From positions 2,592,128 through 2,656,127 of the forward strand of contig CM121341.1 in NCBI GenBank assembly GCA_051530055.1: 64,000 nucleotides of DNA, given 5' to 3'. The notes under the pieces are model-generated. The model did not search any database and was not told the origin of the DNA. It worked only from the letters and a program-made list of their open reading frames with translations. A program made the position numbers and the translations under genes. Below, in pieces: positions 8,627-53,593 of the stretch. This DNA comes from Neoechinorhynchus agilis. Lineage: Eukaryota > Animalia > Acanthocephala. Every line of letters starts with the position of its first letter. Position 1 is the stretch's first letter.

Positions 8627-8766
8627 GCTGTAGTGCAACCCCGGCTTGATCCGCGATGGATTCTACGCGCAAAGATCGCATCTCAGCACTCAATCAAGTT
8701 TTTCTCTTTACTTTTTAACTGGACCAATCCCAGCTGTAGTGCAACGCCGGGTTGATCCGCGATGGA
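8627..8766. repeat. Two 34-bp direct subrepeats just 3' of 28S (ETS/IGS-like)
   Basis: gctgtagtgcaac(c/g)ccgg(c/g)ttgatccgcgatgga at 8627-8660 and 8733-8766. Confidence 0.75.
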
Positions 8767-9108
8767 GTCCATGCAAGCACGGTGTCTCCATCTCCGTCCC
8801 AAAAATAACTTTGACAAATTGGGAATCCAATGGATCCCCCGCTAGATGTCAAACTAGCGAGAACAGATACTACACTTTGATCTTAGCCTTTCGGCAAGAA
8901 GCGATAGCTTAGAACAGCGCACTCTAGGATTTAACTCTAAACATGTATCCGAATTAAAAACTTTCTGATTCAATACGTAATGCGAAGACATTTGCTGAAA
9001 GAACGCAATTTCCATTAATTTTTCCGATCGAGTTTTTCCTTCGAGGGATTCAGCTCATTTTCTGCATACAGAGAGTCTTTCCCATCTAGAGATTCGTTTG
9101 TAAACATG

Positions 9109-14870: not shown

Positions 14871-16084
14871 AGACCAATTGAAATTAGAAACCATTGATAT
14901 TATCACGGGATACTTAATTGGCGAATGCAGCTGCAGGCAAATCCTCAAACGCAAACCGAGGGAATCCAACCGTAACCTCGCAGTTAAGATCTTAAAGAAC
15001 GCCACACTTAACTTCTAAATGGATGATTGCGAAGTCAAGATGTTTAAGACAATAAAAGAGACCAATTGAAATTAGAAACCATTGATATTATCACGGGATA
15101 CTTAATTGGCGAATGCAGCTGCAGGCAAATCCTCAAACGCAAACCGAGGGAATCCAACCGTAACCTCGCAGTTAAGATCTTAAAGAACGCCACTCTGAAC
15201 TTCTAAATGGATGATTGCGAAGTCAAGATGTTTAAGACAATAAAAGAGGCCGAGGTAGAACGAGCAAATATCACAGTTCCCCTGGAAATGTTTAAGCATT
15301 GTTGTCACCAGTTCATTATTCCTGAACACTACGAAATGGACCTTAATGTGCCTGTAAACACATTTGGAGCAATGCAAATCAATCGATTGTTCTACTTGAT
15401 AGGCAAAATGTTGCGAAAATTAGAGAAGTTAAAAGATCTTAATATTGTTCATGGAGATTTCAAACCAATCAGCATTATGATGGTCAGTTGTCTAAGTAAA
15501 TCTGAACAATTCAAACTCATTAATTTTGGTCATGCCGTGCAGCTACGAAACCAAGAGTCTCTTTATGGATACCTCCAAACTTCATACTATCGCGCTTCGG
15601 AATTGATAGTGGATTTACCCACCGCCAAATCAATCGACATGTGGAGCCTTGGTTGCACTATCGGGGAACTGGCGGTTAGCAGGCCAATTTTTCCAGGGAG
15701 TGATGATTATGAGACGGTCCTTGATAATGGAGTACGGACATTGCTATATTATAATGATACAATCAACGGAGATGGATGGATGTTGAAATCTCAATTGGAA
15801 AGAGGAATCTTTCCATTGAACAGCAGTGCGCTACATCCACCGAATGTTATGCCCTTAGTTTACCCGACACAACAAGATACGCAAAATCCAACAAATTTGT
15901 GGCAATTCTGGATCGTATGTTTAAACTTTCACCCGGGATCGAGTTGATCCAACTGTCGCCCTTCAAATATACTTTTCAGAGAACGCTGACACTCAATTCA
16001 GCGCTGGTGGGCCTTCATGATTATGCAATTCGATTGTTCAGAATTTCGGACATTTGTCGATGTTTTGGCACTTGCTTCAAATAA
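14871..16084 (+). pseudogene. HIPK/DYRK-like Ser/Thr kinase pseudogene, copy 1
   Basis: LAVKILKN, IVHGDFKP, KLINFG, YYRASE, IDMWSLGC..GEL...P.FPG. Carries an in-frame TAA before ATG 15207, a 188-bp internal tandem duplication (14871-15058 / 15059-15246), a deletion near HPP and a 3' frameshift. Confidence 0.85.
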
Positions 16085-22924: not shown

Positions 22925-24338
22925 CTAAGGTGAAAAATTAAGTGATAGTTAGATCGTACTTTGGGATGCGAGATTTTTAATGAAACGACCAAAAAAATTG
23001 AAGCAAAAATTGATTCAGGCCTCCAGCGATGAATAGTTCGTGATCTTGAACCTCATGTTTACTTCAATAAAATCGGTCAAAAAACAAAATTATAATAACA
23101 CGTCTAATTTTATTTAAAGTAGAGGAGCCGTGTACTCCGGATCCACGGGAACACTCAAACACCCATCAATAACGAATATTCTATATATCAAAAACCATTA
23201 AACATCTTTGTCGACAAGTTTACGATTCGTGCAACATTTTAGCTGCATTCAAAAGGCCAGGTTAACGTGCCATCGATTTCTTCTTTGAGTGTATTCGCTA
23301 TTTATACATATAGAATAAAGGTCAATAATATTTTAAGTTTAACGGAAATACAATTCGATGAAAATGTTTGGTCGGTGTTCGATAGTGCACATAGATTAAA
23401 AGTAGTTAAAATTGCAAACATTTAGTTATTCAAACCCAATCAATAATTTGTTTTTGATCGTGAGAAAATGAACAACGTTGCGTATTATAAAACATTTGCA
23501 AAGGACCGGAGACCTGAAGAAGTCCGACGAGACGGACGAAACATTGAGAATTCACTAGAAAAATGTTTTTAGAAGCAATATAAAATTTTAGTTAATTTAA
23601 TTATGATGTCCATCTTGTTATGAGATTTAAACGAACGCTCTGATGGAGAAATTCATGAGAATAAATTCAACATGTGATTCCACAGAATACAATTTAACGT
23701 TTTTACTCGCTTAGTATTTACACATTCATTCGGTTGAAACAATAAAAAGATTACGAAATACCATTTTTGCTCATGCCTTGAATTGAAATTTGTAACGTGA
23801 CTTTAGGCAATATGATATTTGAATCGATAAAGATTATGACAAAATAAAGTGCATTCTAAAAGTGTTAAGATTTGTAAATCATAAGGAATTATCTCGATTA
23901 GCGTTTGAGATATCGACAACAACATTTCTCAATAAGTAGGTTCTTTTCATTCAATGAAATGTCTATTAACTGCACAAATTCCCTTTTGTTTCTGAATATT
24001 CTTAAACTTTAATTTATCGTTGCTTTTGAGAGAGAGAGTTCCATTTCTAAAAATATGATGATAAAAGTAGATGAAAATAAATATTCAAATTTACGCTTCG
24101 ATCTTTTAGAATACAAAAGCAACTTATGCTTTTCGCATTAAACTCGTGTTCATATTTCCTCACCATAATCAATAAATTCGTACAAACTGTTTAATCGCGC
24201 GCATAAATAACTTATAATAGTGTTTCAGCTTTATAAAGGGAATTGATTATATCAGAGATTTGCTTATATAAATTAATACCCATCATGAAATTTTCAATAG
24301 CGGTCTATTACTTAAATTCACAAAAATCAAAGCAGTAT

Positions 24339-25330
24339 TTATTTGAAGCAAGTGCCAAAACATCGACAAATGTCCGAAATTCTGAACAATCGAATTGCAT
24401 AATCATGAAGGCCCACCAGCGCTGAATTGAGTGTCAGCGTTCTCTGAAAAGTATGTTTGAAGGGCGACAGTTGGATAAACTCGATCCCCGGGGGAAAGTT
24501 TAAACATACGATCCAGAATTGCCACAAATTTGTTGGATTTTGCGTATCTTGTTTTGTCGGGTAAACTAGGGGCATAAGGTTAATAATGCTGTCCAATGAC
24601 CCTATCGGTGGATGTAGCGCACTGCTGTTCAATGGAAAGATTCCTCTTTCTAATGGAGATTTCAGCATCCATCCGTCTCCGTTGATTGTATCATTATAAT
24701 ATAGCAATGTCCTTACTCCATTATCAAGGACCGTCTCATAATCATCACTCCCTGGAAACATTGGCCTGCTAACCGCCAGTTCCCCGATAGTGCAACCAAG
24801 GCTCCACATGTCGATTGATTTGGCGGTGGGTAAATCCACTATCAATTCCGAAGCGCGATAGTATGAAGTTTGGAAGTATCCATAAAGAGACTCTTGGTTT
24901 CGTAGCTGCACGGCATGACCAAAATTATTGAGTTTGAATTGTTCAGATTTACTTAGACAACTGACCATCATAATGCTGATTGGTTTGAAATCTCCATGAA
25001 CAATATTAAGATCTTTTAACTTCTCTAATTTTCGCAACATTTTGCATGCCAGGTAGAACAATCGATTGATTCGCATTGCTCCAAATGTGTTTACAGACAC
25101 ATTAAGGTCCATTTCGTAGTGTTCTGGAATAATGAACTGGTGACAACAATGCTTAAACATTTCGAGGGGAACTGTGATATTTGCTCGTTCAACCTCGGCT
25201 ACTTTTATTGCATTAAACATCTTGACTTCGCGATCATCCATTTAGAAGTTCAGAGTGGCGTTCTTTAAGATCTTAACTGCGAGGTTACGGTTGGATTCCC
25301 TCGGTTTGCGTTTGAGGATTTGCCTGCAGC
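24339..25330 (-). pseudogene. HIPK/DYRK-like kinase pseudogene, copy 2
   Basis: 300-aa ORF 25241-24339 with the same motifs. The AVKILK lysine lies upstream of the shared TAA, and the subdomain XI-like text is in another frame. Confidence 0.85.
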
Positions 25331-26536
25331 TGCACTCGCCAATTAAGTCTCCCGTGATAATATCGATGGTTTCTAATTTCAATTGGTCTCATATTTCAAT
25401 TGGTCTCCAATTTCAATCAAATTTTTAATGGGAAACACAACACTTTCTCTCCCTCAAGCACAACGCCTTAAAAATTTACTTCATCAAACGCCTCCGACAT
25501 TAAGGAATCCCTTCACCTGATCTACAAATTTTACTTCAGCTTTACTTTACCCTCGTCACCTACGGTTATCCCGCATTTTGCAACCTATCCAGATCTAAAA
25601 TCCGTCGTCTTGAAATTCTTCATAAAATAGCATCTGAAATTTGCACGGCTGAATAAAATTTTCATAAAACAATCAAAACGCCTCTCAACCCTACAACCAC
25701 AATTTCTTCCACATTTCGCTTCCTTTTCACACGAGCGCAACACTCGTAATCCTAATTCGTTTTATCTTCACTCGGCCTCCCCTACGCTCCTTTTTCAATG
25801 CTAGCCAATATTCTCGTATATCAGAACTTGAAATGAACTTGAGGAAAGACCATTGGCCCACCTTACATTCGCGATCCATTGATTCAACTGCTCGTCGACA
25901 AGGTCAATGAAACTAATCGCGAATTGTCGGAATCTTTTAGTTCTCGATTGAACTCTGGATAAAAATTAAATTTAGACGAAAATCCAGCCCGCCAAATAGT
26001 TTACCGCCCGTTTCGCTTTTTACAGACAATCCTTCAAATGTAGTTTTTGGTTGCCAATTCTATCGTTAATGTCATTTTCGAGCAACTCATGATGATAATG
26101 TCGTCGATATTCAGAACACCATTTATCCTAAAGAGGGTGAAATCGATGTGAATTTTAATGGGTCGCTTTTGACTGAAGTAAAAAAATGACCACCATCTTT
26201 ATTTTTTGGGAAATACTTTAAGGCTCGAAAATTACTGGACATTTAAGAGTGTTGGCTGTAAAATCTCAAAAAAATGCAGCTTCTCTGGGCTAACAATCGC
26301 GATCTAATCAGTTTGTTGCCGTTCTTAAAATCGTTTGCTCTATTCTGCCAAGTCATCGCCAGAGGATGATAAGATGATTGTAGGTTCTGAGAGTGGATGT
26401 CGGTCGTTTCCGAGTTTTGTAGTGTCGCAGTTGCGTCCATTTCTCACTTTTCCTTTCTCGTCCAAACTCAACGTTTCGTTATATCCACAACGGTACAGTT
26501 AGACGTCCGATAAAAAATAACAATTATTTGCTGAAA

Positions 26537-28225: not shown

Positions 28226-31200
28226 ATTGAAAGTTCAAGACATCATTAATGGATATCGAATAAAACAATTACGTATAATACTTGCCCACAATCCCATGTG
28301 AATTACTCAAGGTCCCAAAGTTTTGATTGGAATTTGCTAGGGGTTAGAAAATGCCCGTTTGCTGCCTGTATCTTTAATAAAGTTTTAGTTTGCCAGCGCG
28401 ATGTGTAGAGCAAACAGGGTGCGATAATCATAAAATTAATTTTCGCATTTTTAAGCCACCATTCTCACGAACACTAAAATTCTCGCATATCGACATCTGT
28501 ATTTATTTACAACTAAAATCTCTAACTCAATGGATTCTCAGTCATGACGTTCTGTTCCCCCGTCCACTTTCCAATGTATTTTAAGTCCGTATTGGGCTGT
28601 TGAAACATTCTCAATAAGACGGGCGATTGTGACAAGCCGATTAAATACAAAGTGTAATTTAACATGCCTTCATTTTTAATATTGTTATTGTTCATCGTCA
28701 TTAATGACGAATTAAGCTCAATTTGTTTCTTCACAGTTTTCGATCTTTTGTTTGTCGGTCGTTTACCGCTATTGGTATTGATTTTTCTTTTTCTATTACC
28801 GGTCGTCATTCTGTTATCCTACTCTTCCAAAACAAGATTTTTTGTTACATTCTCTACATCGTCCTTGGGCTTTGTCCTAACTCGGAATCATTGTGATTGA
28901 ATGCCTTTAAATCAAAAGGCGGTGGGAACGGAAAACAGCAAAAGTCTTATTGAAAAGGAGTTCCTTGTTAGGGTGTTTGTAGATGCCGGTCAGAAAGGAG
29001 TTAATCAAAACAATGAAATCTAGAAAGTACTCTTAGAGCTAAAATTATTGTCTGTTCTTCACAGAATCAGCGGGCGAATTGCTTTCAATCGACTGATTTT
29101 TCCCATTGTTCGCTATGATAACCTTTTATCAATTTATTAAAAAACCCTGAGTTTCAAAAGCTTTAAAGGAGCTGAAACGAACAGAACTCCCAAAATGAAC
29201 ATTTTTTCGATGTGGGCGTTTCGCTTAAAGTCGAGATGCGAAAAGAGCTATCCATCAGAATATAATGCCAAATCTTACTCCGTCAGAAGTATTCTAATAT
29301 ATTCGAAGTTTCAGAGGACTAATTATATAGCTACGCCCAATTCCCGTTGGGTTTTAGCTGAATTCCGAAGATCCAATGGAAATGCCGTCCGTTGGAAAGA
29401 AGGCCCCGAATTGTAGAGGAAATTATAGAACTGATTAACTCTTCGCTGTTACACTCGCGTATCAATAAAGCAAAATATTTGCGAATAAAAGAAAAAACCA
29501 ATTGCTAACAATCCGATGAATTGGTCGCTATGACAACTTTTGATCAATTTATTGAAATAAACCTTAGTTTTGAAAATTTCAAAGAAGCGACAAATATAAC
29601 TTCGGATTTCTCAGGATGCCGTATTCGTGGGCATCCCAATCCTTCGTTCGGGTTGGGGGGGTTCTTTAAAACGAAGGATTTCTCGGGATGCCGCTGTCGT
29701 TGTGCATCCCAATCATCAGTTGAAGGATTCTTCAAAGCGAAGGATTTTTTGAAATTTCGTCAAGCTAAAGGCGTGAAATATTCGGTACAATTCTTCTACC
29801 TTGAACTTCATGGACTAAGTTGATCAAGGCTTTTTTTAACGGATTGAAGACTTTAATTGCAAAGATTTAATAAATAAAATGTCTTTTGTAAGTTTTAGAC
29901 TTCTGGATCTAGAGTCGTTACTGTAAGCTACGATGTTGCAAAAGATGAGATGGCCTTTTGTAACAAAAAAGAAGATTTAAGATCATTCACACGGACCTCA
30001 ATTACAAAAAAGTTTTTAGCAATGAAGATTTTTGTAAAAATAATTGTCAATATCTACTTGCCAATCTAATGAAAAGTAGTTCGACAGCAAATTTAATACA
30101 TTTTTCATCTTTACTTGCGAGCTTTCGCCGTCTTACGGCTTCCTCAGGAATCAACAATGTGAAGTGTGTTCAACAAGCGGCATCGATGCGCAAAGTTCGC
30201 CGGTCCGTTCAGCAGTTCTGGGGCTTTGTCGAGCTTATGTTTTAGAACTCACTTTCGCATTGTCGACGGAAACATAATTCCCTTCCAGGATATTAATGCA
30301 TCGGCGATAATTCCACCCGGTCCGTGGCCACAAATTTAATTCGCGTGAAGAATATTACTTCGTCGTTGTTGCACTCTGGCTAGTAATTTGCCTTCTGTGT
30401 GGCTACAATTTTGGTCCGGATTCAATGTGTTCCGAACGTGTTCGGTCACACGTTGGCGAAAGCTCGGAAATAAAGATTTTTTTCGTTATCAGTATAACAG
30501 CCCGCCCAAATGTCCATTTAAAACGGAAACCTGGAATTCCGGCCGTTGTCATCTGTTCATTAGCAATCTTATTAAACAATGTGGCCAACCTCCGTAATGG
30601 ATTCCAGATTTTTGCTTTCCAGAGTTCCGTTCCTACATCATCAGGAGCCCCTACTAATCGTATAAAGATTGGAGCTCGACAATATCTTGCGTCTGTTGCT
30701 GTCGGGGTTTGACTAGCGGAAAAAGCTCACGATTATCACCTCCGATGTTGAACTTCTGCATAGTGGATCTCCCGAGCGGCCCAAACGGCTTCCTTCTTCG
30801 CAATCCGATATTTCTGTAAATTTGTCGGCGTTTTGTTTTCAAGAAAGATGTCTCTTCTTTTCGTGAATCTTCTTGTTAACCATATCAGCGCAGAGCAAGA
30901 GATCACAGTCAATAGAGCATTTTCCGGCCTTGGTGCATTCCAGAGACTTGCAAGTTTCGGAATGGATGATTTGCTTCCCTTCACGTTTCCTAAACTGCTT
31001 TGCGCCAAATCGCCACCATTTCGTTTGACTGGGGCCGTTTTTCCAAGTCTTTTTAAACCTGGGACAGAATACTAAAAGTCACCGTTATTCTTTTTCCTCG
31101 CATTGCTGTCTAATTCTGTCAAGATCAAAACTGTAGGACATTGTGCAATCCAAAACCCATTCATTATAGAGGTTTAAAAGACATGGAAAAACAAATAATT

Positions 31201-32319
31201 TAGCTTTGCAGGACCAAGGAAGGTAAGGGAGCAAACGCTAAGCCAAACAGTGACAACGAGTATATTTTTCATATCAAATTAAATAATCCAATACTTGTAA
31301 ATTTGAGTCAGAATATTTCACAGGTTACCAAAGAGCTTGGTTCTGTGCGTTTCTGAATGGACTCATTTGTTTGACTTTACATTGTGGTGCCACAAGTAAT
31401 TGTATTCTTTTTAGTTCGTCCAAGATATGAATTCCAACAAGTAACGCCGTCAAAATCCAGCACACCCAAAATAACTAAAATCGTGCCGAACTTTTATATC
31501 GAATAGAGACGCGATTTCGAGTGTGTGAAGAAACTTAATAGTTACGAAATACAGTCAGTTATAAGTTGCTGCGAAATTGAGAGTTTACCGATCGAAGGAA
31601 TTAAGTGTCATTACATTTTCACAGAAAACGAATTGAACAAGAACGCCAGGCAGCATTTTTAATTGAGCAATTCGATTATACACACAGTTCGCCTCTCGAA
31701 TAAAAGGATTCTGTTACACTGCATCTTGGGCGTTTCCAGTTCTCCTGAACTCGTCGTCGGGTTCTTAATGTAGAGCACTGGAGTTTCTTTATACGATGCT
31801 CTAAGTGGCTTTGTTTCTTCGGGACCTAAATGATTATTCAGGGTACTTTTAGAAAGTAATTTCAATGTTGAAAAGATCGATCTTCTGAGTTTGTCGCCTC
31901 ACTTATCATGGCATTGGCTTTGCCAAATTGATTTGAATTCTATACAAAAAATTGATGTTTCTGCGATTCGCGAATTGAACGCAATACTTAGATTATTGAT
32001 TTAGCACTAGCGGAGTGCTTTTGAGCTAAAAAACATACAATGAGAGGCCGCATCGACCGGCTTCTCAGTTCAAGTTTTGCAGCTTAACAAAATGTTCCGA
32101 CATCGCTCAACGACAAACCAAAAACAGCGTCAGCTTTTGCGATTGGCGAGACCATCGTAGGAATAATAACGGATGATAAGTTAATTTGGGATTACAACAT
32201 AATGTAAAATACTTTGACTGCCTGATTGATGCCGGAGGTGGCAGGTAGTTTGATAAATCTTGCTTCTTGCACTTAAATGTCCTTAGTAATTTTAAATTTT
32301 TCAATGTTTGCAAACAACA

Positions 32320-34231
32320 CCGAATTTTTTAGATTTTTAATTAAAGCCACGATGTGAATGGAACATGCCTACTAAACGACCTACGAGGGGCCCGGAGGAC
32401 TGGGCGTGTGGTGTGCGCGTTCATAATGCGCTTGATATGTCGCTGGTTCAACACCACCGGTCGCCGGGTTAAAGGGGAGTTGCGACGCTGCTGGAAGGGG
32501 TGGGGTTAGGTTTTGACATCGCCCATCGGCCCCAAAGGGGGTTGGCCCTGTTCCTTCGAGTGCGGCTGAGCGCCTCCGATGTGTGTTAGCCGAAAGGCTC
32601 AAAAGAATAAAGAAGATGTCACTGACCAACAAGTGTATGAGGCCTTGAAAAATTAGAGGATAAAAATTAAGAGTGATTCTTCGAATGGACATAACGCATC
32701 CGAATTTTTAGATTTTAATTAAAGCCACGATGTGAATGGTGCCTACTAAACGACCTGCGAGGGCCCAGTGGCCGTTTGGTGTGCGTTCCTGTGCGCTGAT
32801 ATGTCGCTGGTTCAACGCCACCGGTCGCTGGGTTTCACGGGTGTGCGAGGTTGCTGGAAGAGGTGGGGTCAGGATTGAGATCACCCATCGGCCCCAAAGG
32901 GGATTGGCCCTGTTCCTTCGAGTGCGGCTAAGCGCCTCCGTTGTGTGCAACCGAAAGGCTCAAAAAGGAATAAAGATGTCACTGACCAACAAGTGTATGA
33001 GGCCTTGAAAAATTAGAGGATAAAAATTAAGATAGATTCTTCGAATGGACATAACGCATCCGAATTTTTTAGATTTTTAATTAAAGCCACGATGTGAATG
33101 GTGCCTACTAAACGACCTACGAGGGCCCAGTGGCCGTTTGGTGTGCGCGTTCATAATGCGCTTGATATGTCGCTGGTTGAACACCACCGGTCGCTGGGTT
33201 TCACGGTTGTGCGAGGCTGCTGGAAGGGGTGGAGTCAGGTTTTGAGATCGCCCATCGGCCCCAAGGGGGGTTAGCCCTGTTCCTTCGAGTGCGGCTAAGC
33301 GCCTCCGTTGTGTGCAACCGAAAGGCTCAAAAAGGAATAAAGAAGAATGTCACTGACCAACAAGTGTATGAGGCCTTGAAAAATTAGAGGATAAAAATTA
33401 AGATAGATTCTTCGAATGGACATAACGCATCCGAATTTTTTAGATTTTTATTTAAAGCCACGATGTGAATGGTGCCTACTAAACGACCTACGAGGGCCCA
33501 GTGGCCGTTTGGTGTGCGCGTTCATAATGCGCTTGATATGTCGCTGGTTGAACACCACCGGTCGCTGGGTTCCACGGTTGTGCGAGGCTGCTGGAAGGGG
33601 TGGAGTCAGGTTTTGAGATCGCCCATCGGCCCCAAGGGGGGTTAGCCCTGTTCCTTCGAGTGCGGCTAAGCGCCTCCGTTGTGTGCAACCGAAAGGCTCA
33701 AAAAGGAATAAAGAAGATGTCACTGACCAACACGTGTATGAGGCCTTGAAAAATTAGAGGATAAAAATTAAGATAGATTCTTCGAATGGACATAACGCAT
33801 CCGAATTTTTTAGATTTTTAATTAAAGCCACGATGTGAATGGTGCCTTCTAAACGACCTACGAGGGCCCAGTGGCCGTTTGGTGTGCGCGTTCATAATGC
33901 GCTTGATATGTCGCTGGTTGAACACCACCGGTCGCTGGGTTCCACGGTTGTGCGAGGCTGCTGGAAGGGGTGGAGTCAGGTTTTGAGATCGCCCATCGGC
34001 CCCAAGGGGGGTTAGCCCTGTTCCTTCGAGTGCGGCTAAGCGCCTCCGTTGTGTGCAACCGAAAGGCTCAAAAAGGAATAAAGAAGATGTCACTGACCAA
34101 CAAGTGTATGAGGCCTTGAAAAATTAGAGGATAAAAATTAAGATAGATTCTTCGAATGGACATAACGCATCCGAATTTTTTAGATTTTTAATTAAAGCCA
34201 CGATGTGAATGGTGCCTACTAAACGACCTAC
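32320..34231 (+). repeat. ~370-bp tandem array (5 units plus a partial) with a tRNA-like head
   Basis: The marker ccgaattttttagatttt..taaagccacgatgtgaatgg recurs at about 32320, 32700, 33060, 33431, 33800 and 34171. The two outer units are more diverged. Confidence 0.95.
33124..33203 (+). ncRNA. tRNA(Met, CAT)-like structured element, one per repeat unit (SINE head or Pol III ncRNA)
   Basis: Closing stem ggcccagtggcc/ggtcgctgggtt; anticodon-like arm gcgcg-TTCATAA-tgcgc; T-arm gctgg-tt(c/g)aaca-ccacc; A-box-like TGGCCGTTTGG; B-box GTTCAACAC in the outer units; TTTT about 40 nt downstream. No canonical D arm. Confidence 0.5.
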
Positions 34232-34769
34232 AACAAAAATAATAAATTTCTATCATCTGTATTCTCATAACTATTTTTTTGTTCTTCCTTTAAACCAGAT
34301 CTTCAAGCGCCATCAACTTCCATAAATAATGGCGACCTCCTTAATTTTATTGAGAACCCCTAATTGAGATTCTACCCTTTGGCAGCGCTCTACATTGTAC
34401 CTTAGTTGATCGTTGAACATTGAAGATTATATCGTTATTGGGAGTGATTCCATCCTATACTCTAACTATCAGTGATTATTCCAACGTTGGAGGATCCAAT
34501 TAAGTCCTCTTTTGTCTATAAATTTTGAACCAATCATAAGTCCAAAGGAGGAGTGACTATCGGAGATTTAAGTGTACCCATGCCGCTCGCATCGTTTTTG
34601 CGGAAAAACATGGATAGATCCAATAAAGGCTTAAATTTCAGGTGGTATTATACTCGTCGAAATCAAGTCCAAGTGAAAAAACTCGATTTAGTTGTTCTAT
34701 GAAATGTCGACAATTTTACATCAATACTCTGGGCAGCGTTTATAAGGATGATATCAATAAATAGCTTAT

Positions 34770-35290: not shown

Positions 35291-37218
35291 TCTGTCGGCG
35301 AATTCTATTGCTCGAGCGATGTCTTCGAGACTGTATTATTTGGTCATTTATAACAAATGCGCCTCCCATTAATAACACGTTTTATTGATTTTTGTGCTTA
35401 AGAAATTAGACCAATGTACCTTTGGATCCTCAAAAACACGCGGTTATGTTAAATCCTTTGCCACGACCTATAAGTGGTCGTAATGGGAAACATGCGATAA
35501 GCTTTAGACTTAATGCGTGAGAAAGGCTTAATATAAAGGCAATTACACCTGTGAAACTTTCTTTCATTAATTTTTCGTGCTCTTCACAGACCTCGATCGT
35601 AATTTTTCAAATATCTTCACCCTGTAAATTCAAGAAAAGATGCTGAAACAATATTAAAAAGAATAAAAATTCAAACTCTTTTTGTACGCATTTTTTACAA
35701 AATTTAGTTCAAAAACCTCTTTACTAATATTTAATATTTATTAAGAGGCTGCCATTTTCTGAGAATGCCAAATCCGGACCGGGTGCGAATATCCATCCGG
35801 GAGATGTTTGTTTGGGTGGGAATATCCGGTCTCGCGGATATTGTTTGTAGGACAGTTCCGGTTCATTTTAGGTCATGATATCCGTGGAGACGTATGGGAA
35901 AGTGCGAACTGGAGGGAGGATGAAACGAATTCAAAAATTGACATCTACATGTTCAATGTTTTCGTAACCAACTGCTTCCTCGAGTTTCCCCCGGAGGTTG
36001 ATGCCGGTACGGAATTAATGGATATGGACGGAGACGAAGGTGGACAATCCATTCCTGAAGTCCTTCATGAGTCCTTTAGGGACATACAATAAATACTTCA
36101 AAACCATACATCTTCAAATGCTGGAACTTTCGATAAAAAGATAATCATTTTCTATCTCACGACCAATCCAGCCGCGTGATTTTCTTCGGAAGCAATATGT
36201 AGCTCCATGGCGTCGATCTCTCAAAGATGATTACAATCGAATCAAATCGATTTCGTTCTTTGAAGGAGTTAATCAATTCCTTTAAGTGATGTGCACAATT
36301 AAACAATTTGTACAAATTTACTGATTTTGAAGAGGAAATATGAATACGAGGTTAATGCGAAAAGCATAAGTTGCTTTTGCAATCTAAAAGATTGAAGCGT
36401 AAATTTAAATATTTATTTTCATCTACTTTTATCATCATATTTTTAGAAATCGAACTCTCTAACAAAAGCTTAAAGTTTAAGAATATTCAGAAACAAAAGG
36501 GAATTTGTGCAGCGAATAGACTTTTAATTGAATGAAAAGAACCTACTTATTGAGAAGTGTCGTTGTCGATATCTGAAACGCTAATCGAGATAATTATTTA
36601 TGATTTACAAATCTTAACACTTTTAGAATGCACTTTATTTTGTCATAATCTTTATCGATTCAAATATCATATTGCCTAAAGTCACGTTACAAACTACAAT
36701 TAAAGGCATGAGCAAAAATGGATCTTTAGCTTGTCTCCTAGAATTCCAGTTTGGAACCATTGTAAGCCTCTTCGAGCAGTTTGATTTTTTTCTTTGCACT
36801 TTTTTGACTTCGGCCAACTGTTCGCCCCTAAGAGATTCCTATTCAAACTGGATAACGTCCGTTAATAAATCCTTAACTACGCTCATTGCTTTTACTAATG
36901 GACCCTTTAGATTATTAGCAACTCGCTCAAAGCACTCCTTTAGTACAACATCGATCGCCAAAATGTTGAAATGTATTACTATTTCAGTGAATATTCCTTA
37001 AAATAACATTATTATCTAAAATGTTTCTTCTCGTATCTTCTATTTTTGGGCAGAGTCAAAAAACTGTGAATTGAAAAGACACATAGCGATGAAATCAATG
37101 AATAAAGATGAAAGAGTGAAGTAAAGATTTTAAAAACGAATCTTTGCACTCGTTACCCTTCTCTCGATGGATAATTAAAGACAACTATTCATTACCAAAA
37201 TAGACGAATGATCAGTGA

Positions 37219-38061
37219 TCACTTTTTTGAACCTTCGATCTTCTTATGCCCTTCGCCTTCTTTAAGCTGAGCGACATAAGGAGCCTCAAGGACGAGTTTT
37301 CCTCCACTGAAATGCGATGTGAGATGTTCAACATCCGTTCCTGGTGGAAGAGTGACTTGCTTGTAATAGTAAGATCTCGAGAATCCTTGTTTTCCATCCT
37401 CTGACTGTTGTGTAGAATGTTCAGCTTTCACGACCAACTCATTATCTTTAAGAGACACCTGCACGTCATTTGGTTTAAACGAACTCACGTCAACGTTCAT
37501 TTCAATCTTCTTTTTCCCGTCTGGAGTATCCACGACTTTTGGGAAGAAATTGCTGTTAAAGAATTCGTCAAAATCAAAGAGGCCAACTTGTCCATGGCCG
37601 CCGGACGGTTTTACGTCGCGCTCTTCCATTTTCAGAGGAATCTCCACAACAAGAACGCCTCCACCGGTCACGAAACTCGTCATCTGATCGGCGATTGCAT
37701 TCTTTGGAACCTCAAAGGACTTTTGGAACTCACGGGAATCGAAATCTCCAGTTTTATTGCATTTATCATGCCTTCGAGCACTGATAACCAATCGCCCGTT
37801 TATGATTTCCGTCTTCAAATCCTTTTTATCGAATCCCTGGACATTCAGAGTAACTCGAAACTTCTCTGGTCTTGGACGTCTTCGTCCGTGGACATCGAGG
37901 AGAGTTGGAGGCTCATTAATCCAAAAGAGGCTCGGACGCACTGATGGACGAAGGGAAAGATCGTAGTCGTCAAATGGATCGAACAGGTCCAACGCGGGAC
38001 CGAACAGATTGTCAAAGTCGAAGAAGTTGCGGCGGTAGCGCGAGATTGGAAATAGAGACAT
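37219..38061 (-). CDS. Small heat-shock protein with two alpha-crystallin domains, 280 aa, intronless
   Basis: Complete ORF with F/D/P-rich N-terminus (MSLFPISRYRRNFFDFDNLFGPALDLFDPFDD) and two ACDs. Differs from the 1-754 copy at EGEG versus EDEG. Confidence 0.95.
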   Translation of the reverse strand: MSLFPISRYRRNFFDFDNLFGPALDLFDPFDDYDLSLRPSVRPSLFWINEPPTLLDVHGRRRPRPEKFRVTLNVQGFDKKDLKTEIINGRLVISARRHDKCNKTGDFDSREFQKSFEVPKNAIADQMTSFVTGGGVLVVEIPLKMEERDVKPSGGHGQVGLFDFDEFFNSNFFPKVVDTPDGKKKIEMNVDVSSFKPNDVQVSLKDNELVVKAEHSTQQSEDGKQGFSRSYYYKQVTLPPGTDVEHLTSHFSGGKLVLEAPYVAQLKEGEGHKKIEGSKK

Positions 38062-40589: not shown

Positions 40590-40790
40590 CTTATATTATT
40601 CTCAATTGTCCTTCACCGTCCCCAAGACACTCGCTGCGTTTCCTCGCTGGATAGCCAAGGATATGTTCTGCACTAGGAACGAGCGAGCCCTCCTGTCATT
40701 GGTCAAGTTGATCAGTCGATGCCCCAGTTCGAGAACAAAACTCCTCGCCGCACGTCCGAAAGCTGGGTTCGCAATAAAATTAAGGAGGTC
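40590..40790 (-). mobile_element. CRE-clade retrotransposon C-terminal fragment
   Basis: Minus-strand translation FGRAARSFVLELGHRLINLTNDRRARSFLVQNISLAIQRGNAASVLGT. Confidence 0.75.
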
Positions 40791-40892
40791 GCCATTATTT
40801 ATGGAAGTTGATGGCGCTTGAAGATCTGGTTTAAAGGAAGAACAAGAAAATAGTTATGAGAATGCAGATGATAGAAATTTATTATTTTTGTT

Positions 40893-42061
40893 GTAGGTCG
40901 TTTAGTAGGCACCATTCACATCGTGGCTTTAAATAAAAATCTAAAAAATTCGGATGCGTTATGTCCATTCGAAGAATCTATCTTAATTTTTATCCTCTAA
41001 TTTTTCAAGGCCTCATACACTTGTTGGTCAGTGACATATTCTTTATTCCTTTTTGAGCCTTTCGGTTGCACACAACGGAGGCGCTTAGCCGCACTCGAAG
41101 GAACAGGGCCAACCCCCCTTGGGGCCGATGGGCGATCTCAAAACCTGACTCCACCCCTTCCAGCAGCCTCGCACAACCGTGGAACCCAGCGACCGGTGGT
41201 GTTCAACCAGCGACATATCAAGCGCATTATGAACGCGCACACCAAACGGCCACTGGGCCCTCGTAGGTCGTTTAGTAGGCACCATTCACATCGTGGCTTT
41301 AGTTAAAAATCTAAAAAATTCGGATGCGTTATGTCCATTCGAAGAATCTATCTTAATTTTTATCCTCTAATTTTTCAAGGCCTCATACACTTGTTGGTCA
41401 GTGACATCTTCTTTATTCCTTTTTGAGCCTTTCGGTTGCACACAACGGAGGCGCTTAGCCGCACTCGAAGGAACAGGGCTAACCCCCCCTGGGGCCGATG
41501 GGCGATCTCAAAACCTGACTCCACCCCTTCCAGCAGCCTCGCAAAACCGTGGAACCCAGCGACCGGTGGTGTTCAACCAGCGACATATCAAGCGCATTAT
41601 GAACGCGCACACCAAACGGCCACTGGGCCCTCGTAGGTCGTTTAGTAGGCACCATTCACATCGTGGCTTTATTAAAAATCTAAAAAATTCGGATGCGTTA
41701 TGTCCATTCGAAGATCTATCTTAATTTACATCCTCCAATTTTTCAAGGCCTCATACACTTGTTGGTCAGTGACATCTTCTTTATTCCTTTTTGAGCCTTT
41801 CGGTTGCACACAACGGAGGCGCTTAGCCGCACTCGAAGGAACAGGGCCAACCCCCCTTGGGGCCGATGGGCGATCTCAAAACCTGACTCCACCCCTTCCA
41901 GCAGCCTCGCACAACCGTGGAACCCAGCGACCGGTGGTGTTCAACCAGCGACATATCAAGCGCATTATGAACGCGCACACCAAACGGCCACTGGGCCCTC
42001 GTAGGTCGTTTAGTAGGCACCATTCACATCGTGGCTTTAATTAAAAATCTAAAAAATTCGG
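40893..42061 (-). repeat. ~370-bp tandem array (3 units plus a partial), inverted partner of 32320-34231
   Basis: The reverse-complement marker ends at about 40952, 41322, 41691 and 42061. Confidence 0.95.
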
Positions 42062-45000
42062 TGTTGTTTGCAAACATTGAAAAATTTAAAATTACTAAGG
42101 ACATTTAAGTGCAAGAAGCAAGATTTATCAAACTACCTGCCACCTCCGGCATCAATCAGGCAGTCAAAGTATTTTACATTATGTTGTAATCCCAAATTAA
42201 CTTATCATCCGTTATTATTCCTACGATGGTCTCGCCAATCGCAAAAGCTGACGCTGTTTTTGGTTTGTCGTTGAGCGATGTCGGAACATTTTGTTAAGCT
42301 GCAAAACTTGAACTAAGAAGCCGGTCGATGCGGCCTCTCATTGTATGTCTTTTAGCTCAAAAGCACTCCGCTAGTGCTAAATCAATAATCTAAGTATTGC
42401 GTTCAATTCGCGAATCGCAGAAACATCAATTTTTTGTATAGAATTCAAATCAATTTGGCAAAGCCAATGCCATGATAAGTGAGGCGACAAACTCAGAAGA
42501 TCGATCTTTTCAACATTGAAATTACTTTCTAAAAGTACCCTGAATAATCATTTAGGTCCCGAAGAAACAAAGCCACTTAGAGCATCGTATAAAGAAACTC
42601 CAGTGCTCTACATTAAGAACCCGACGACGAGTTCAGGAGAACTGGAAACGCCCAAGATGCAGTGTAACAGAATCCTTTTATTCGAGAGGCGAATTGTGTG
42701 TATAATCGAATTGCTCAATTAAAAATGCTGCCTGGCGTTCTTGTTCAATTCGTTTTCTGTGAAAATGTAATGACACTTAATTCTTCGATTGGTATGCTCT
42801 CAATTCCGCAGCAACTTATAACTGACTGTATTTCGTAACTATTAAATTTCTTCACACACTCGAAATCGCGTCTCTATCCGATATAAAAGTTCGGCACGAT
42901 TTTAGTTATTTTGGGTGTGCTGGATTTTGACGGCGTTACCAGTTGGAATTCATATCCTGGACGAACTAAAAAGAATACAATTACTTGTGGCACCACAATG
43001 TAAAGTCAAACAAATGAGTCTCTTCAGAAAACGCACAAAACCAAGCTCTTTGGTAACCTGTGAAATATTCTGACTCAAATTTACAAGTATTGGATTATTT
43101 AATTTGATATGAAAAATATACTCGTTGTCACTGTTTGGCTTAGCGTTTGCTCCCTTACCTTCCTTGGTCCCGCAAAGCTAAATTATTTGTTTTTCCATGT
43201 CTTTTTAAACCTCTATAATGAATGGGTTTTGGATTGCACAATGTCCTACAGTTTTGATCTTGGACAGAATTAGACAGCAATGCGAGGAAAAAGAATAACG
43301 GTGACTTTTAGTATTCTGTCCCAGGTTTAAAAAGACTTGGAAAAACGGCCCCAGTCAAACGAAATGGTGGCAATTTAGCGCAAAGGAGTTTAGGAAACGT
43401 GAAGGGAAGCAAATCATCCATTCCGAAACTTGCAAGTCTCTGGAATGCACCAAGGCCGGAAAATGCTCTATTGACTGTGATCTCTTGCTCTGCGCTGATA
43501 TGGTTAACAAGAAGATTCACGAAAAGAAGAGACATCTTTCTTGAAAACAAAACGCCGACAAATTTACAGAAATATTGGATTGCGAAGAAGGAAGCCGTTT
43601 GGGCCGCTCGGGAGATCCACTATGCAGAAGTTTCAACATCGGAGGTGATAATCGTGAGCTTTTTCCGCTAGTCAAACCCCGACAGCAACAGACGCAAGAT
43701 ATTGTCGAGCTCAATCTTTATACGATTAGTAGGGGCTCCTGATGATGTAGGAACGGAACTCTGGAAAGCAAAAATCTGGAATCCATTACGGAGGTTGGCC
43801 ACATTGTTTAATAAGATTGCTAATGAACAGATGACAACGGCCGGAATTCCAGGTTTCCGTTTTTTAAATGGACATTTGGGCGGGCTGTTATACTGATAAC
43901 GAAAAAAATCTTTATTTCCGAGCTTTCGCCAACGTGTGACCGAACACGTTCGGAACACATTAAATCCGGACCAAAATTGTAGCCACACAGAAGGCAAATT
44001 ACTAGCCAGAGTGCAACAACGACGAAGTAATATTCTTCACGCGAATTAAATTTGTGGCCACGGACCGGGTGGAATTATCGCCGATGCATTAATATCCTGG
44101 AAGGGAATTATGTTTCCGTCGACAATGCGAAAGTGAGTTCTAAAACATAAGCTCGACAAAGCCCCAGAACTGCTGAACGGACAGGACGAACTTTGCGCAT
44201 CGATGCCGCTTGTTGAACACACTTCACATTGTTGATTCCTGAGGAAGCCGTAAGACGGCGAAAGCTCGCAAGTAAAGATTTTCTTTATTATTACAATAGG
44301 CCGTAAAGTGTTCATTTAAAAAGAAAACTTAATCAATAATGCGGCTGGAAATCAAGTAGTATTTTACAAGATTGGGCACAAAAATTTCGTGAGCTCCTCT
44401 GCACAAAATATGCATCAAGGAGCCTCCTTGCCTTCAAAAACAAAATCCACCCACTTTGAATATCGCTGGCATATGCGTAGGACGTTATCAAATATCGATT
44501 ATTTTGATCTGGTGAATGAACCTTTATTGGAAAAGATTCAGAGGGATTACGCACTCGAAGATACAGCCACATCAACTGTTGCCGAGTAGAGGATCGCAAA
44601 GGCCGTACTTTCATTGTTTTAGTACAAACATTTTTATAGATTAAAAGTTATGTTCTTCTTTTAATGGCTTTAAAGTCATTTTGATCTAATCTTTGTAGCG
44701 GCTTCAGCATAAAGAAAGTTACTGTCCTCGACAGATCATTATGGCAGACTGATGAATATTAAAGTATTTCAGAAAACAAGTCTTTACCTATCTTAACAAT
44801 AAAGATGAAAAATGTATTAAATTTGCTGTCGAACTACTTTTCATTGGATTGGCAAGTAGATATTGACAATTATTTTTACAAAAAACCTTCATTGCTAAAA
44901 TCTTCTTTTTTTAATTTTCAGCATATAATTCTTATTTTTTATCGGACGTCTAACTGTACCGTTGTGAAGATAAAACGAAACTTTGAGTTTGGACGAGAAA

Positions 45001-50900: not shown

Positions 50901-52599
50901 TTGTGCTCCTGAATTCTCCTGTTTGGATCGTTCGTTTGTCCGATGTAGACCTGATTACATTCACTACATGGAATCTTGTATACTGATCCAGATTGAGGCT
51001 CGATTTTTTTGTTGGGACAAAGCAGTGTGTAAATTACGTCCCTTCCGAAGCGGCTTCAGCATAAAGAAAGTTACTGTCCTCGACAGATCATTATGGCAGA
51101 CTGATGAATCCTAAAGTATTTCAGAAAAAAGTATTTACCTGGCAAGTAGATATTGACAATTATTTTTACAAATATCTTCATTGCTAAAAACTTTTTTGTA
51201 ATTGAGGTCCGTGTGAATTGTCTTAAATCTTCTTTTTTTTTAATTTTCAGCATATAATTCTTATTTTTTATCGGACGGTTAACTGTACCGTTGTGGATAA
51301 AACGAAACTTTGAGTTTGGACGAGAAAGGAAAAGTGAGAAATGGACGCAACTGCGACACTACAAAACTCGGAAACGACCGACATCCACTCTCAGAACTGG
51401 CGATGACTTGGCAGAATAGAGCAAACGATTTTAATAACGGCAACAAACTGATTACATCGCGATTATTCTTATATTGGGGGACTGGAACACATTAATGCAA
51501 TCCTTTTAAGGGACGTAGCGACTCATTAAAGGCCAATTCTCAGCTAGTAGCCCAGAAAAGCTGCATTTTTTGAGATTTTACATCCAACAATCTTAAATGT
51601 CCAGTAATTTTCGAGCCTTAAAGTATTTCCATAAAATAAAAGCAAGATAAAAATTTTATGAATTTCACAAGCCACAGGTTTCTTCGGTTGGTTGAAATAT
51701 TGTAACTATGATGGTGGTCATTTTTTTTCTAGACGTCAGTCAAAAGCGACCCATTAAAATTCACATCGATTTCACCCTCTTTAGGATAAATGGTGTTCGT
51801 TCCGACGTTTGGGACCGTTTTTCTTATTGAATATCGACGACATTATCATCATGAGTTGCTCGAAAATGACATGAACAAAGGAATTGGTAACCAAAAACTA
51901 CATTTTAAGGATTGTCTGTAAAAAGCGAAAAGGGCGGTAAACTATTTCGCTGGCTGGATTTTCGTCTAAATTTAATTTTTATCCAGAGTTCAATCGAGAA
52001 CTAAAAGATTCCGACAATTCGCGATTACTTTCATTGATCTTGTCGACCTCAATGATCTCTCCTCAAGTTCATTTCAAGTTCTGATATTCGAGAATATTGT
52101 CTAGCATGGAAAAAGGAGCGTAGGTGAGGCCGAGTGAAGATGAAACGAATTAGGATTACGAGTGTTGCGCTCGTGTGAAAAGGAAGCGAAATGTGGAAGA
52201 AATTGTGGTTGTAGGGTTGAGAGGCGTTTTGATTGTTTTATGAAAATTTTATTAAAGTATTCGGTGAGAGGGGGGAAAGACAGCCGTGCAAATTTTAGAT
52301 GCTATTTTATGAAGAATTTCAAGACGACAGACTTGAGATCTGGATTGGTTGCAAAATGCGGGATAACCGTAGGTGACGAGGGTAAAGTAAAGCTGAAGTA
52401 AAATTTGTAGATCAGGTGAAGGGATTCCTTAATGTCGGAGGCGTTTGATGAAGTAAATTTTTAAGGCGTTGCTCTTGAGGGAGAGAAAGTGTTGTGTTTC
52501 CCATTCAAAATTTGATTGAAATTGGAGACCAATTGAAATATGAGACCAATTGAAATTAGAAACCATCGATATTATCACGGGAGACTTAATTGGCGAATG

Positions 52600-53593
52600 C
52601 AGCTGCAGGCAAATCCTCAAACGCAAACAGAGGGGATCCAACCGTAACTTTGCAGTTAAGATCTTAAAGAACGCCACTCTGAACTTCTAAATGGATGATT
52701 ACGAAGTCAAGATGTTTAAGACAATAAAAGAGGCCGAGGTAGAACGAGCAAATATCGCAGTTCCCCTCGAAATGTTTAAGTATTGTGGTCACCAATTCAT
52801 TATTCCTGAACACTACGAAATGGACCTTAATGTGTCTGTAAACACATTTGGAGCAATGCAAATCAATCGATTGTTCTACTTGGCATGCAAAATGTTGCGA
52901 AAATTGGAGAAGTTAAAAGATCTTAATATTGTTGATGGAGATTTCAAACCAATCAGCATTATGATGGTCAGTTGTCTAAGTAAATCTGAACAATTCAAAC
53001 TCATTAATTTTGGTCATGCCGTGCAGCTACGAAACCAAGAGTCTCTTTATGGATACTTCCAAACTTCATACTATCGCGCTTCGGAATTGATAGTGGATTT
53101 ACCCACCGCCAAATCAATCGACATGTGGAGCCTTGGTTGCACTGTCGGGGAACTGGCGGTTAGCAGGCCAGTGTTTCCAGGGAGTGATGGTTATGAGACG
53201 GTCCTTGATAATGGAGTACGGACATTGCTATATTATAATGATACAATCAACGGAGACGGATGGATGCTGAAATCTCCATTGGAAAGAGGAATCTTTCCAT
53301 TGAACAGCAGTGCGCTACATCCACCGATAGGGTCATTGGACAGCATTATTAACCTTATGCCCCTAGTTTACCCGACACAACAAGATACGCAAAATCCAAC
53401 AAATTTGTTGCAATTCTGGATCGTATGTTTAAACTTTTCCCCGGGGATCGAGTTTATCCAACTGTCGCCCTTCAAACATACTTTTCAGAGAACGCTGACA
53501 CTCAATTCAGCGCTGGTGGGCCTTCATGATTATGCAATTCGATTGTTCAGAATTTCGGACATTTGTCGATGTTTTGGCACTTGCTTCAAATAA
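52600..53593 (+). pseudogene. HIPK/DYRK-like kinase pseudogene, copy 3
   Basis: 300-aa ORF 52691-53593 with catalytic loop DGDFKPIS, NFG and ASE; same upstream TAA and 3' frameshift as copy 2. Confidence 0.85.

Follow-up and report, generated by a model that had tools for sequence, protein, structure and literature searches.

A tRNA-headed SINE family in Neoechinorhynchus agilis and a 370-bp satellite probably derived from one of its copies

Introduction

tRNA-derived SINEs (SINE2/tRNA) are short retroposons that are mobilized by LINEs and carry an internal Pol III promoter. Satellite formation from SINEs is an already known route to satellite DNA, exemplified by the sSats of squamates (PMC10702118) and by PcH-Sat of limpets, which derives from the Nin-SINE (PMC11121367). 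Other mobile elements form tandem arrays together with a piece of their target: in Drosophila, an R1 array with 33-nt rDNA duplications and dimers of hobo and P elements have been described, and their expansion was attributed to unequal exchange (McGurk and Barbash 2018, PMC5932611). tRNA mimics, such as mascRNA and the TMERs of MHV68, and D-armless tRNAs are a further point of comparison, with their stem and anticodon-like hairpin.

Here we describe a locus of the acanthocephalan Neoechinorhynchus agilis that resembles SINE-derived satellites in its short, low-copy arrays, in its SINE-derived monomer, and in the independent occurrence of such arrays at several loci and in several subfamilies of one genome. 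It differs from them in that the monomer comprises a SINE that is complete except for its tail, together with two segments of non-SINE DNA (A and B), rather than a portion of a SINE, and in that an empty paralogous site documents the state before the array. As in arrays of the R1 and hobo type, the unit comprises a mobile element and one copy of the target, and the duplication bounds the array on both sides; unlike in the R1, hobo and P arrays, the duplication is 61 bp long and the junction lacks a tail, which is atypical for retrotransposition.

Results

A preliminary description of the window, which is the whole 64,000-nucleotide stretch of DNA analysed here, had reported tandem arrays of a unit of about 370 bp, and these arrays are real. 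TRF detected a left array at 32320-34231 on the plus strand (period 370 bp, 5.2 copies, 94% matches, score 3343) and an inverted right array at 40893-42061 on the minus strand (period 370 bp, 3.2 copies, 98% matches). Megablast revealed an inverted duplication of about 4 kb, with a left arm at 30107-34359 (plus strand; inverted repeats I3, I5, I13 and I18) that holds the left array and a right arm at 40765-44279 (minus strand), the arms being 97-98.5% identical. The 6.4-kb spacer between the arms contains an HSP20/alpha-crystallin open reading frame (37219-38061, minus strand; Pfam PF00011, E 4.8e-30), which lies outside the repeat and belongs to the context of the locus. A role of the two arrays as TFIIIC-type insulators around this gene was considered and found unsupported, the box-B C being changed to G in the young units. 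This region of the window is very rich in repeats.

TRF and alignment of the units delimited five units in the left array (u1, 32320-32699; u2, 32700-33059; u3, 33060-33430; u4, 33431-33800; u5, 33801-34170; plus strand), which are followed by an additional terminal segment B at 34171-34231. The right array, on the minus strand, comprises three units (R1, 42061-41693; R2, 41692-41324; R3, 41323-40954) and likewise ends in a terminal B at 40953-40893. Each unit consists of 61 bp of local target DNA (B), a SINE without its tail and a 52-bp segment (A). In unit 3, B occupies 33060-33120, starting with CCGAATTTTTTAG and ending with CGACCTAC, the SINE occupies 33123-33378, with its full-length 5' end and without the (TAAA)n tail, and A occupies 33379-33430, starting with AAAAATTAGAGG and ending with ACGCAT (all on the plus strand). 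Dispersed genomic matches place the equivalent SINE starts at 32387, 32761, 33494 and 33864 in the other left units and at 41998, 41630 and 41260 in the right units.

Segment B, which contains T6 and T5 runs, flanks each SINE-A insert and stands at both ends of the array, giving the order L-B-(SINE-A-B)x5-R, in which L and R are the left and right flanks. Segment A is joined straight to the SINE at the position where a tail is expected, and it lies outside the SINE family: copies with 100% identity occur in a non-SINE context at G000:C2:6994475 (L036) and C54:6965 (L035). The junctions within and between units share only 0-1 nt (with junctions marked by a slash, B/GA/SINE, SINE TTG/A and A/C of B).

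At a paralogous site 41 kb away (L034; G000:C1:2550252-2551512) the array is missing, and L, one single B of host target DNA and R are contiguous. Because the array is bounded by B and L034 holds a single B, we infer that amplification took place at the DNA level and in situ. In principle, the empty site could itself be a collapsed array, since recombination between two B copies restores L-B-R exactly.

Two units are diverged, both in the left array only. The SINE of unit 1 (32387-32647, plus strand) is a mosaic in the alignments: from its head as far as roughly the CCGAAAGG hairpin, which amounts to the 5' two-thirds of the unit, it is of the type of another subfamily (that of copy L026) and has a 6-nt insertion, and its 3' part is of the array type. 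Unit 1 is a recombinant with another SINE subfamily. In the SINE of unit 2 (32761-33007, plus strand), a 4-nt deletion and substitutions have destroyed the anticodon-like arm.

Recurrence of the unit elsewhere in the genome is restricted to unit positions 64-323 (64-283 for some matches). A first look yielded 225 candidates, which are spread over all three chromosomes and share a sharp 5' end at GGGCCCAGTGG, that is, unit position 64. The 25-mer at the head has 140 genomic matches when up to 3 mismatches are allowed, and its reversed control has 0; we accordingly count at least 140 dispersed copies. Target-site duplications, defined as exact direct repeats of at least 8 bp, flank 13 of 15 full-length copies and 0 of 210 mismatched control pairs; they measure 8-12 bp, with one of 40 bp. 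The ~80-nt "tRNA-like RNA" of the preliminary description is the head of this dispersed tRNA-headed SINE of N. agilis, which has far more than 100 copies. The question it had raised, whether copies are dispersed with target-site duplications or tandem only, is answered in favour of the former.

The family agrees with tRNA-derived SINEs in its head, which is tRNA-like and carries boxes A and B, its length of ~300 bp, its non-coding structured body and its (TAAA)n-type tails, which the dispersed copies have and the array copy lacks. It also shares with them the short target-site duplications, the occurrence of 5'-truncated copies (L028, which has a target-site duplication, L020 and L025) and subfamilies with a common head and body and different 3' modules. 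The TTTT run (33240-33243, plus strand), small hairpins and A-rich stretch that had been noted in the unit are present; the T4 run recurs in 19 of 31 copies and is a feature of the family. When a LINE partner was sought with the 73-nt 3' module, 79 candidates emerged; 40 of these were scored and all resemble SINE copies, with one partial match at C2:7258501. An exact-pattern scan of metagenome contigs with a 28-nt head motif gave 0 matches. No description of SINEs in Acanthocephala was found in the papers searched, and the family is new to that literature.

The head of unit 3 comprises 82 nt (33123-33204, plus strand) and is supported by its fold and by its similarity to the genome's own tRNAs. 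Its minimum free energy is -37.4 kcal/mol (z -3.5), none of 200 shuffles being as good, and dispersed copies reach z -4.6; the stable fold of ~80 nt that had been proposed is thus beyond chance, with a closing stem of 13-14 bp. In this stem 33123-33135 pairs with 33189-33201. The hairpin read as GCGCG/TTCATAA/TGCGC at 33145-33161 and the nine nucleotides between it and the closing stem were confirmed; this hairpin is anticodon-like, with CAT at 33152-33154. The head stem is directly followed by CCA or TCA; the CCA seen earlier is present in u4, u5 and R1-R3 and also in 31 of 36 dispersed copies. The proposed T-like arm holds up only weakly: 72% of cells pair, one of its five pairs never forms, and the arm is absent from the minimum-energy fold, in which the 3' half of the arm is base-paired to the D region instead.

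Covariation, which the preliminary description had put forward as support for its tRNA-like RNA, was not borne out. Across 41 heads, the proposed fold has 90.8% of its cells paired; column shuffles give 90.7%, and 70 of 500 reach the observed value. Its covariation score is 0.057, compared with 0.055 for the shuffles, of which 133 of 500 score at least as much, and a double-sided change occurs in one cell only. The minimum-energy fold likewise has no covariation across copies above that of shuffles; in this test for compensatory change, as expected of a functional structured RNA, observed values equal shuffled values for both folds. The G32394:C32465 pair that had been read as compensatory is a single case in the mosaic unit 1, and in L026 the same C stands opposite an unpaired A.

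ARAGORN found 0 tRNAs in the 64-kb window. The Rfam tRNA model RF00005 has no match in the array units or in 10 dispersed copies, even at E<=10, so the Rfam check suggested earlier for one unit brought no tRNA to light. At the gathering thresholds and at E<=10, Rfam gave chance-level snoRNA and miRNA matches only, and no tRNA, SINE-related or hammerhead family. Unlike in other tRNA-derived SINEs, the head forms a long hairpin rather than a cloverleaf, because the 3' half of the D arm has been lost and about 6 nt have been gained before the 3' acceptor strand. With tRNA mimics and D-armless tRNAs it has in common the stem, the anticodon-like hairpin and, in some copies, CCA; it differs from both in having no cloverleaf, no match to the tRNA model, no covariation and no host transcript context, and its CCA belongs to the retroposon consensus.

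Comparison of the head with the genome's own tRNAs gave scores of 59-67, against a shuffle-null maximum of 45 +/- 4. Whole-length alignment cannot name the ancestor, because tRNA-Leu-CAG, tRNA-Met and tRNA-Ile tie. At isotype-specific positions, which lie in the acceptor stem and the anticodon loop, elongator tRNA-Met agrees at 17 of 21, Ile-AAT at 15 of 21 and the others at no more than 13, in a sample of 30 anticodon classes that lacks Val, Pro, Phe, His, Asp and some more. Elongator tRNA-Met is therefore the best but unproven candidate, and is only moderately favoured.

The box-A consensus is TRGCNNAGTGG. Alignment and column counts identified a box-A-like motif, TGGCCGTTTGG, at 33131-33141, and alignment a box-B-like motif, GGTTGAACACC, at 33175-33185 (both plus strand). 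They lie at head positions 9-19 and 53-63, with tRNA-like spacing. For box A, the family consensus TGGCCGTGTGG agrees with the canonical one at 10 of 11 positions, and a subfamily with TGGCCGAGTGG at 11 of 11; box B agrees at 10 of 11. At the motif level, the SINE head is therefore predicted to contain an internal Pol III promoter. The position equivalent to C56 of box B is C in 34 of 36 dispersed copies and G in six young array units. TFIIIC-dependent targeting is lost when C56 of box B is changed to G (PMC5391098).

Further arrays of the same SINE superfamily were detected by TRF with other periods (13.7 x 329 bp, 2.7 x 265 bp and 2.2 x 320 bp), and tandem SINE copies occur at at least 8 loci. 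Identical tail-to-head junctions recur between sites: three sites on C1 share ...AAATAAACCACACATA/GGACC, two on C3 share GATAAATAG/GGGCCC, and another two on C3 share AAATGCGAC(C/G)CATA/GGGGG.

Discussion

Our data indicate that the array is very probably a SINE-derived satellite that arose by an ordinary route, in which a SINE together with 61 bp of its landing site was multiplied in place. We propose that the SINE spread by LINE-type retrotransposition to far more than 100 sites. At this locus one tail-less copy, joined to an unrelated 52-bp sequence (A), would have come to stand between two copies of B. The B repeats, and at a later stage whole units, would then have undergone unequal exchange and so turned this B-SINE-A-B structure into a small satellite with a 370-bp period; this exchange is the most likely amplifier. 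The whole locus lies in the inverted segmental duplication, and the unit numbers of the two arms would since have diverged to 5 and 3.

Canonical target-primed insertion is at odds with the lack of an A-rich tail beside the downstream B and with the fact that B does not start with A. Moreover, target duplications are seldom as long as 61 bp, though one family member has 40 bp. The non-canonical SINE-A junctions suggest that the first event may have been DNA repair or a template switch rather than retrotransposition. Double insertion is unlikely, because the same unique SINE-A chimera is present in all units; one insertion flanked by 61-bp repeats and followed by exchange fits better. B stands between units and at both array ends and is single at the empty L034, as in arrays of the R1 and hobo type.

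It is possible, though unlikely, that the array originated from an extrachromosomal or rolling circle, (SINE-A-B)n, re-integrated by homologous recombination at B, or from template switching during replication, which would have produced both the duplication and the mosaic insert in one step. A single crossover in B would yield exactly L-B-(SINE-A-B)n-R, the three-part mosaic unit and its 0-1 nt junctions are of the kind left by non-homologous or template-switch repair, and the Bari1 arrays have been suggested to stem from rolling circles (PMC5932611). The sequence is equally compatible with a circle and with unequal exchange. However, a circle must already carry B beside SINE-A, and an earlier joining at the locus or its paralogue is therefore still needed. 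The unit counts of 5 and 3 in the two arms imply that unequal exchange or slippage acted later under any model.

We consider it doubtful that this tRNA-headed SINE superfamily is unusually prone to become satellite by a specific route and not just by chance. The identical junctions at distant loci would fit insertion of multimeric cDNA with read-through or circular RNA as its template, in the manner of a retrozyme; the 370-bp array would then be a DNA-level exception, because its unit contains host target DNA. A hammerhead core requires CUGANGA. The sister subfamily reads CTGAAGA, and the array subfamily reads CTGACCA instead, which makes a hammerhead in the array SINE unlikely.

The other alternative raised in the preliminary description, arrayed Pol III ncRNA genes or cassettes punctuated by tRNAs, found no support, the box-B mutation and the decayed units speaking against it. 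In this reading the units would be working D-armless tRNA-like or SINE-derived Pol III RNA genes, ended at the T6 of B or cut by RNase P/Z and amplified for dosage, which we regard as highly improbable on present sequence data. The stable head fold (z -3.5 to -4.6), the box-A- and box-B-like motifs and the T6 and T5 runs after each unit would suit such genes. The unit, however, belongs to a decaying retroposon family without covariation; the six youngest units have G at the cytosine of box B that TFIIIC requires, u2 has no hairpin and u1 is a mosaic. In addition, neither ARAGORN nor Rfam recognizes a tRNA, and the paralogous locus does without the array. The units thus probably have no working RNA function. 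An assembly artefact, whether a chimeric long read that folds back on itself or a repeat that was collapsed or expanded, is hardly credible, even though the region is repeat-rich and the assembly combines error-prone long reads and Hi-C scaffolding (PMC12690905): a fold-back would give identical arms, whereas the arms are 97-98.5% identical, carry private substitutions, 5 versus 3 units and diverged units on the left only, and a third, empty paralogue lies 41 kb away.

Taken together, these results favour the first alternative of the preliminary description, an undescribed tRNA-Met-derived SINE amplified in tandem, with the Met origin only moderately favoured, and remove a candidate "new tRNA-like RNA gene family". 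They document a SINE family in Acanthocephala, a phylum without described SINEs in the literature searched. The birth of a satellite can be read in a single assembly, from an empty paralogue through the 61-bp direct repeat that seeded it to later mosaic and damaged units. For annotation of this compact 46-Mb genome they carry a warning: a first look gives 2843 tRNA-like candidates, and instead of tRNA genes many of these may represent heads of SINEs.

Results

The published assembly of Neoechinorhynchus agilis comprises 46.2 Mb in 102 contigs (N50 16.4 Mb), three of which hold 94.26% of the sequence (PMC12690905); the assembly used here (G000; 46,219,100 bp, 102 contigs) has three large contigs of 19.38, 16.38 and 7.82 Mb. 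The window (G000:C1:2592128-2656127) is a duplication-rich gene-family cluster, filled with segmental duplications and fragments of reverse transcriptase; its HSP20 and protein-kinase ORFs are duplicated. Two duplication pairs are 97% (23483-25651 and 52281-54449) and 99% (1-1187 and 36786-37972) identical. The HSP20/alpha-crystallin ORFs (32-754, + strand; 37219-38061, - strand, in the 6.4-kb spacer between the arms of an inverted duplication) and protein-kinase-domain ORFs (15207-15947, +; 24339-25241, -; 52691-53593, +) occur in two to three copies each inside nested direct and inverted segmental duplications. Of eukaryotic origin, the window also contains a U2 snRNA gene that looks complete (8714-8905, -), together with SSU and LSU rRNA fragments (5755-8598, +; LSU model positions 1496-3399 only). 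The rRNA fragments adjoin the U2 gene and lie outside any rDNA unit. A tandem repeat at 55831-56797 (period 441 bp, 2.2 copies; sub-period 222 bp, 4.4 copies) is unrelated to the SINE described below.

TRF recovered the tandem array claimed in the preliminary description, with a 370-bp unit in 5.2 copies at 32320-34231 (+; units u1-u5), and an inverted 370-bp array of 3.2 copies at 40893-42061 (-; R1-R3). Each arm of the inverted duplication (30107-34359 and 40765-44279, 97-98.5% identity) holds one array. The outer flanks of the arms are 100% identical over 764 bp; the arms differ in unit number (5 vs 3) and also in u1 and u2, the old, diverged outer units (90-93% identity).

Within a unit, a 61-bp segment B (from CCGAATTTTTTAG to CGACCTAC) is followed by the two bases GA, a tail-less SINE of ~256 bp and a 52-bp segment A, and the left array reads L-B-(SINE-A-B)x5-R, where L and R are its flanks. 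SINE-free, 100% identical copies of segment A lie at C2:6994475 and on contig C54. At a paralogous locus 41 kb upstream on the opposite strand (L034, G000:C1:2550252-2551512), left flank, a single B and right flank are contiguous, with 95-98% identity to the array locus. The 370-bp monomer thus includes local target DNA, so that amplification took place in situ at the DNA level and not via an RNA multimer. A unique SINE-A junction is common to all eight units, and they therefore descend from one event.

A whole-genome search with one unit gave 225 first-look candidates, spread over all three chromosomes; beyond both arrays, only unit positions 64-283 or 64-323 matched, with a sharp start at 33123, at GGGCCCAGTGG. 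A 25-nt hairpin motif had 140 genome matches at <=3 mismatches vs 0 for its reversed control. Dispersed copies carry (TAAA)n-type tails and have direct repeats on either side; exact target-site duplications, 8-12 bp long and in one case 40 bp, flank 13 of 15 full-length copies, and none of 210 mismatched flank pairs reached 8 bp. 5'-truncated copies are present, one of them (L028) with its own duplication. In the head, the ~80-nt tRNA-derived 5' part of the SINE, the consensus matches a box-A-like motif (positions 9-19) at 10/11 bases, rising to 11/11 in a subfamily with TGGCCGAGTGG, and a box-B-like motif (positions 53-63) lies at the spacing of a tRNA gene. Multiple subfamilies share head and body and differ in their 3' modules. 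The repeated element is thus, at the sequence level, a tRNA-headed SINE with the hallmarks of tRNA-derived SINEs. Dispersal, tails, target duplications, 5' truncation and boxes A and B uphold the first of two earlier alternatives, a SINE amplified in tandem, and settle for dispersal the question of whether copies are scattered with target duplications or only tandem. The N. agilis genome paper makes no mention of SINEs (PMC12690905), and a full-text literature search found no paper on SINEs in Acanthocephala.

Near the end of C2, a chromosome-scale contig, the copy with the 40-bp exact duplication (L012, G000:C2:16322527-16323350) has a COX1-like mitochondrial fragment with two in-frame TGA (C2:16319085-16320107) at a distance of ~3 kb. 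One subfamily (L094, L098-L102, L104, L106 and other loci) combines the common head and body with another 3' module (...CAATCAATCTGAAGAACATAACCATGCGTATGTCTGACTGTAAGG plus tail). Downstream of the CCGAAAGG hairpin it has CTGAAGA, a match to the CUGANGA box, which is absent from the array subfamily.

Against 53 distinct tRNAs of the same genome (30 anticodon classes; an incomplete set), the head scored 59-67, exceeding the shuffled-head maximum of 45 +/- 4; its tRNA ancestry is therefore well supported. Scored over the whole length, Leu-CAG, elongator Met and Ile-AAT cannot be told apart. At isotype-distinguishing positions (5' acceptor strand, anticodon loop and 3' acceptor strand), elongator tRNA-Met matches 17/21, Ile-AAT 15/21 and every other class <=13, which makes elongator tRNA-Met the best candidate ancestor within this incomplete set. 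CCA follows the acceptor-like strand in 31 of 36 copies and is part of the family consensus.

The ~80-nt fold of the preliminary description held in most respects. The head of unit 3 (33123-33204, 82 nt) folds at -37.4 kcal/mol (z -3.5), far below shuffles, and values down to z -4.6 occur among dispersed relatives. The closing stem (13-14 bp), the GCGCG/TTCATAA/TGCGC hairpin, the nine nucleotides between them, CCA after the stem in inner units, TTTT at 33240-33243 and small hairpins downstream of it are all present. The T-like arm is missing from the MFE structure, which pairs the 3' half of that arm with the D region and is predicted to be a long hairpin, not a cloverleaf. ARAGORN found no tRNA in the 64-kb window, and at E<=10 neither the array nor ten dispersed copies gave an Rfam match to one.

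The claim of covariation failed. Across 41 heads (36 dispersed, five array), the proposed fold is 90.8% paired vs 90.7% with partners shuffled in columns (70/500 shuffles as high), its covariation score is 0.057 vs 0.055 (133/500 as high), and only one double-sided change occurs; the MFE fold on the same alignment likewise gave no covariation signal vs shuffles. The head fold belongs to the consensus, i.e. to the source gene, and single copies merely decay. The pair G32394:C32465, earlier read as compensatory, lies in unit 1; in L026, a dispersed locus, the same C stands opposite an unpaired A. From the head to about the CCGAAAGG hairpin, unit 1 is of the L026-type subfamily, and from there through A and B it is of array type, so that its sequence marks it as a mosaic from recombination or conversion.

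Discussion

The second earlier alternative, an array of Pol III ncRNA genes or tRNA-punctuated cassettes, finds no support, and a box-B change, decayed units and an array-free paralogue speak against it. The box-B cytosine is C in 34/36 dispersed copies and G in the six young units (u3-u5, R1-R3); a C56G-equivalent change abolishes TFIIIC-dependent recognition (PMC5391098). The anticodon-like hairpin is lost in u2, and the array is missing at L034. Nothing in these sequences points to the array as a working RNA gene; if the head were transcribed, the RNA would be expected to stop after ~315 nt, at the T6 and T5 runs with which B begins. Nor does the array qualify as a tRNA, a tRNA-like processing signal or a conserved structured RNA.

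Unequal exchange between B repeats most likely built the array. An insert between 61-bp direct repeats would have been a ready substrate: exchange between both B copies would yield a dimer, and exchange between 370-bp units the array. The locus would later have been duplicated in inverted form, or its arms would have undergone gene conversion; the 764-bp outer flanks are identical, while unit number and u1/u2 divergence differ. Expansion by unequal exchange is documented for the Drosophila R1 array, which carries 33-nt target duplications between units, and for hobo (PMC5932611); these arrays have the same seeding architecture as the one here. Since unit junctions share only 0-1 nt and the downstream B has no tail beside it, canonical retrotransposition was not necessarily the founding event; long duplications do occur in this SINE family, as at L012. 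Rolling-circle amplification or integration of a circle, or a template switch in one step, would give the same end product as unequal exchange, and we consider these routes less likely.

Other arrays of the same SINE superfamily lie at C1:3.706 Mb (13.7 x 329 bp), C1:4.059 Mb (2.2 x 320 bp), C3:3.990 Mb (2.7 x 265 bp) and C3:3.635 Mb (about four units), besides several dimers. The 329-bp satellite, 13.7 copies long, is built from a sister subfamily of the array SINE and is likewise read as SINE-derived. Three distant C1 loci (L037, G000:C1:3705800-3711600; L041, C1:4058700-4060400; L125, C1:9399550-9400072) share one tail-to-head junction, ...AAATAAATAAACCACACATA|GGACC, which points to either satellite dispersal or multimer insertion. 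On C3, tandem SINEs at L038 (G000:C3:3989600-3991200) and L023 (C3:4109313-4110404) have the common junction GATAAATAG|GGGCCC, those at L040 (C3:3609300-3610300) and L104 (C3:3635690-3636212) have AAATGCGAC(C/G)CATA|GGGGG, and four SINE copies stand ~300 bp apart at C3:3634786-3635768.

Taken together, the preliminary observation was largely right apart from covariation, and the array is a SINE-derived satellite. It thus belongs to an already known type, the same as the SINE-derived satellites of squamates (PMC10702118) and of a limpet (PMC11121367). Applied genome-wide, Rfam's model for tRNA yielded 2843 first-look candidates, 63 of them scored, and many of the unscored ones may be SINE heads; within these 46 Mb, tRNA-like sequences are possibly far more numerous than true tRNA genes.
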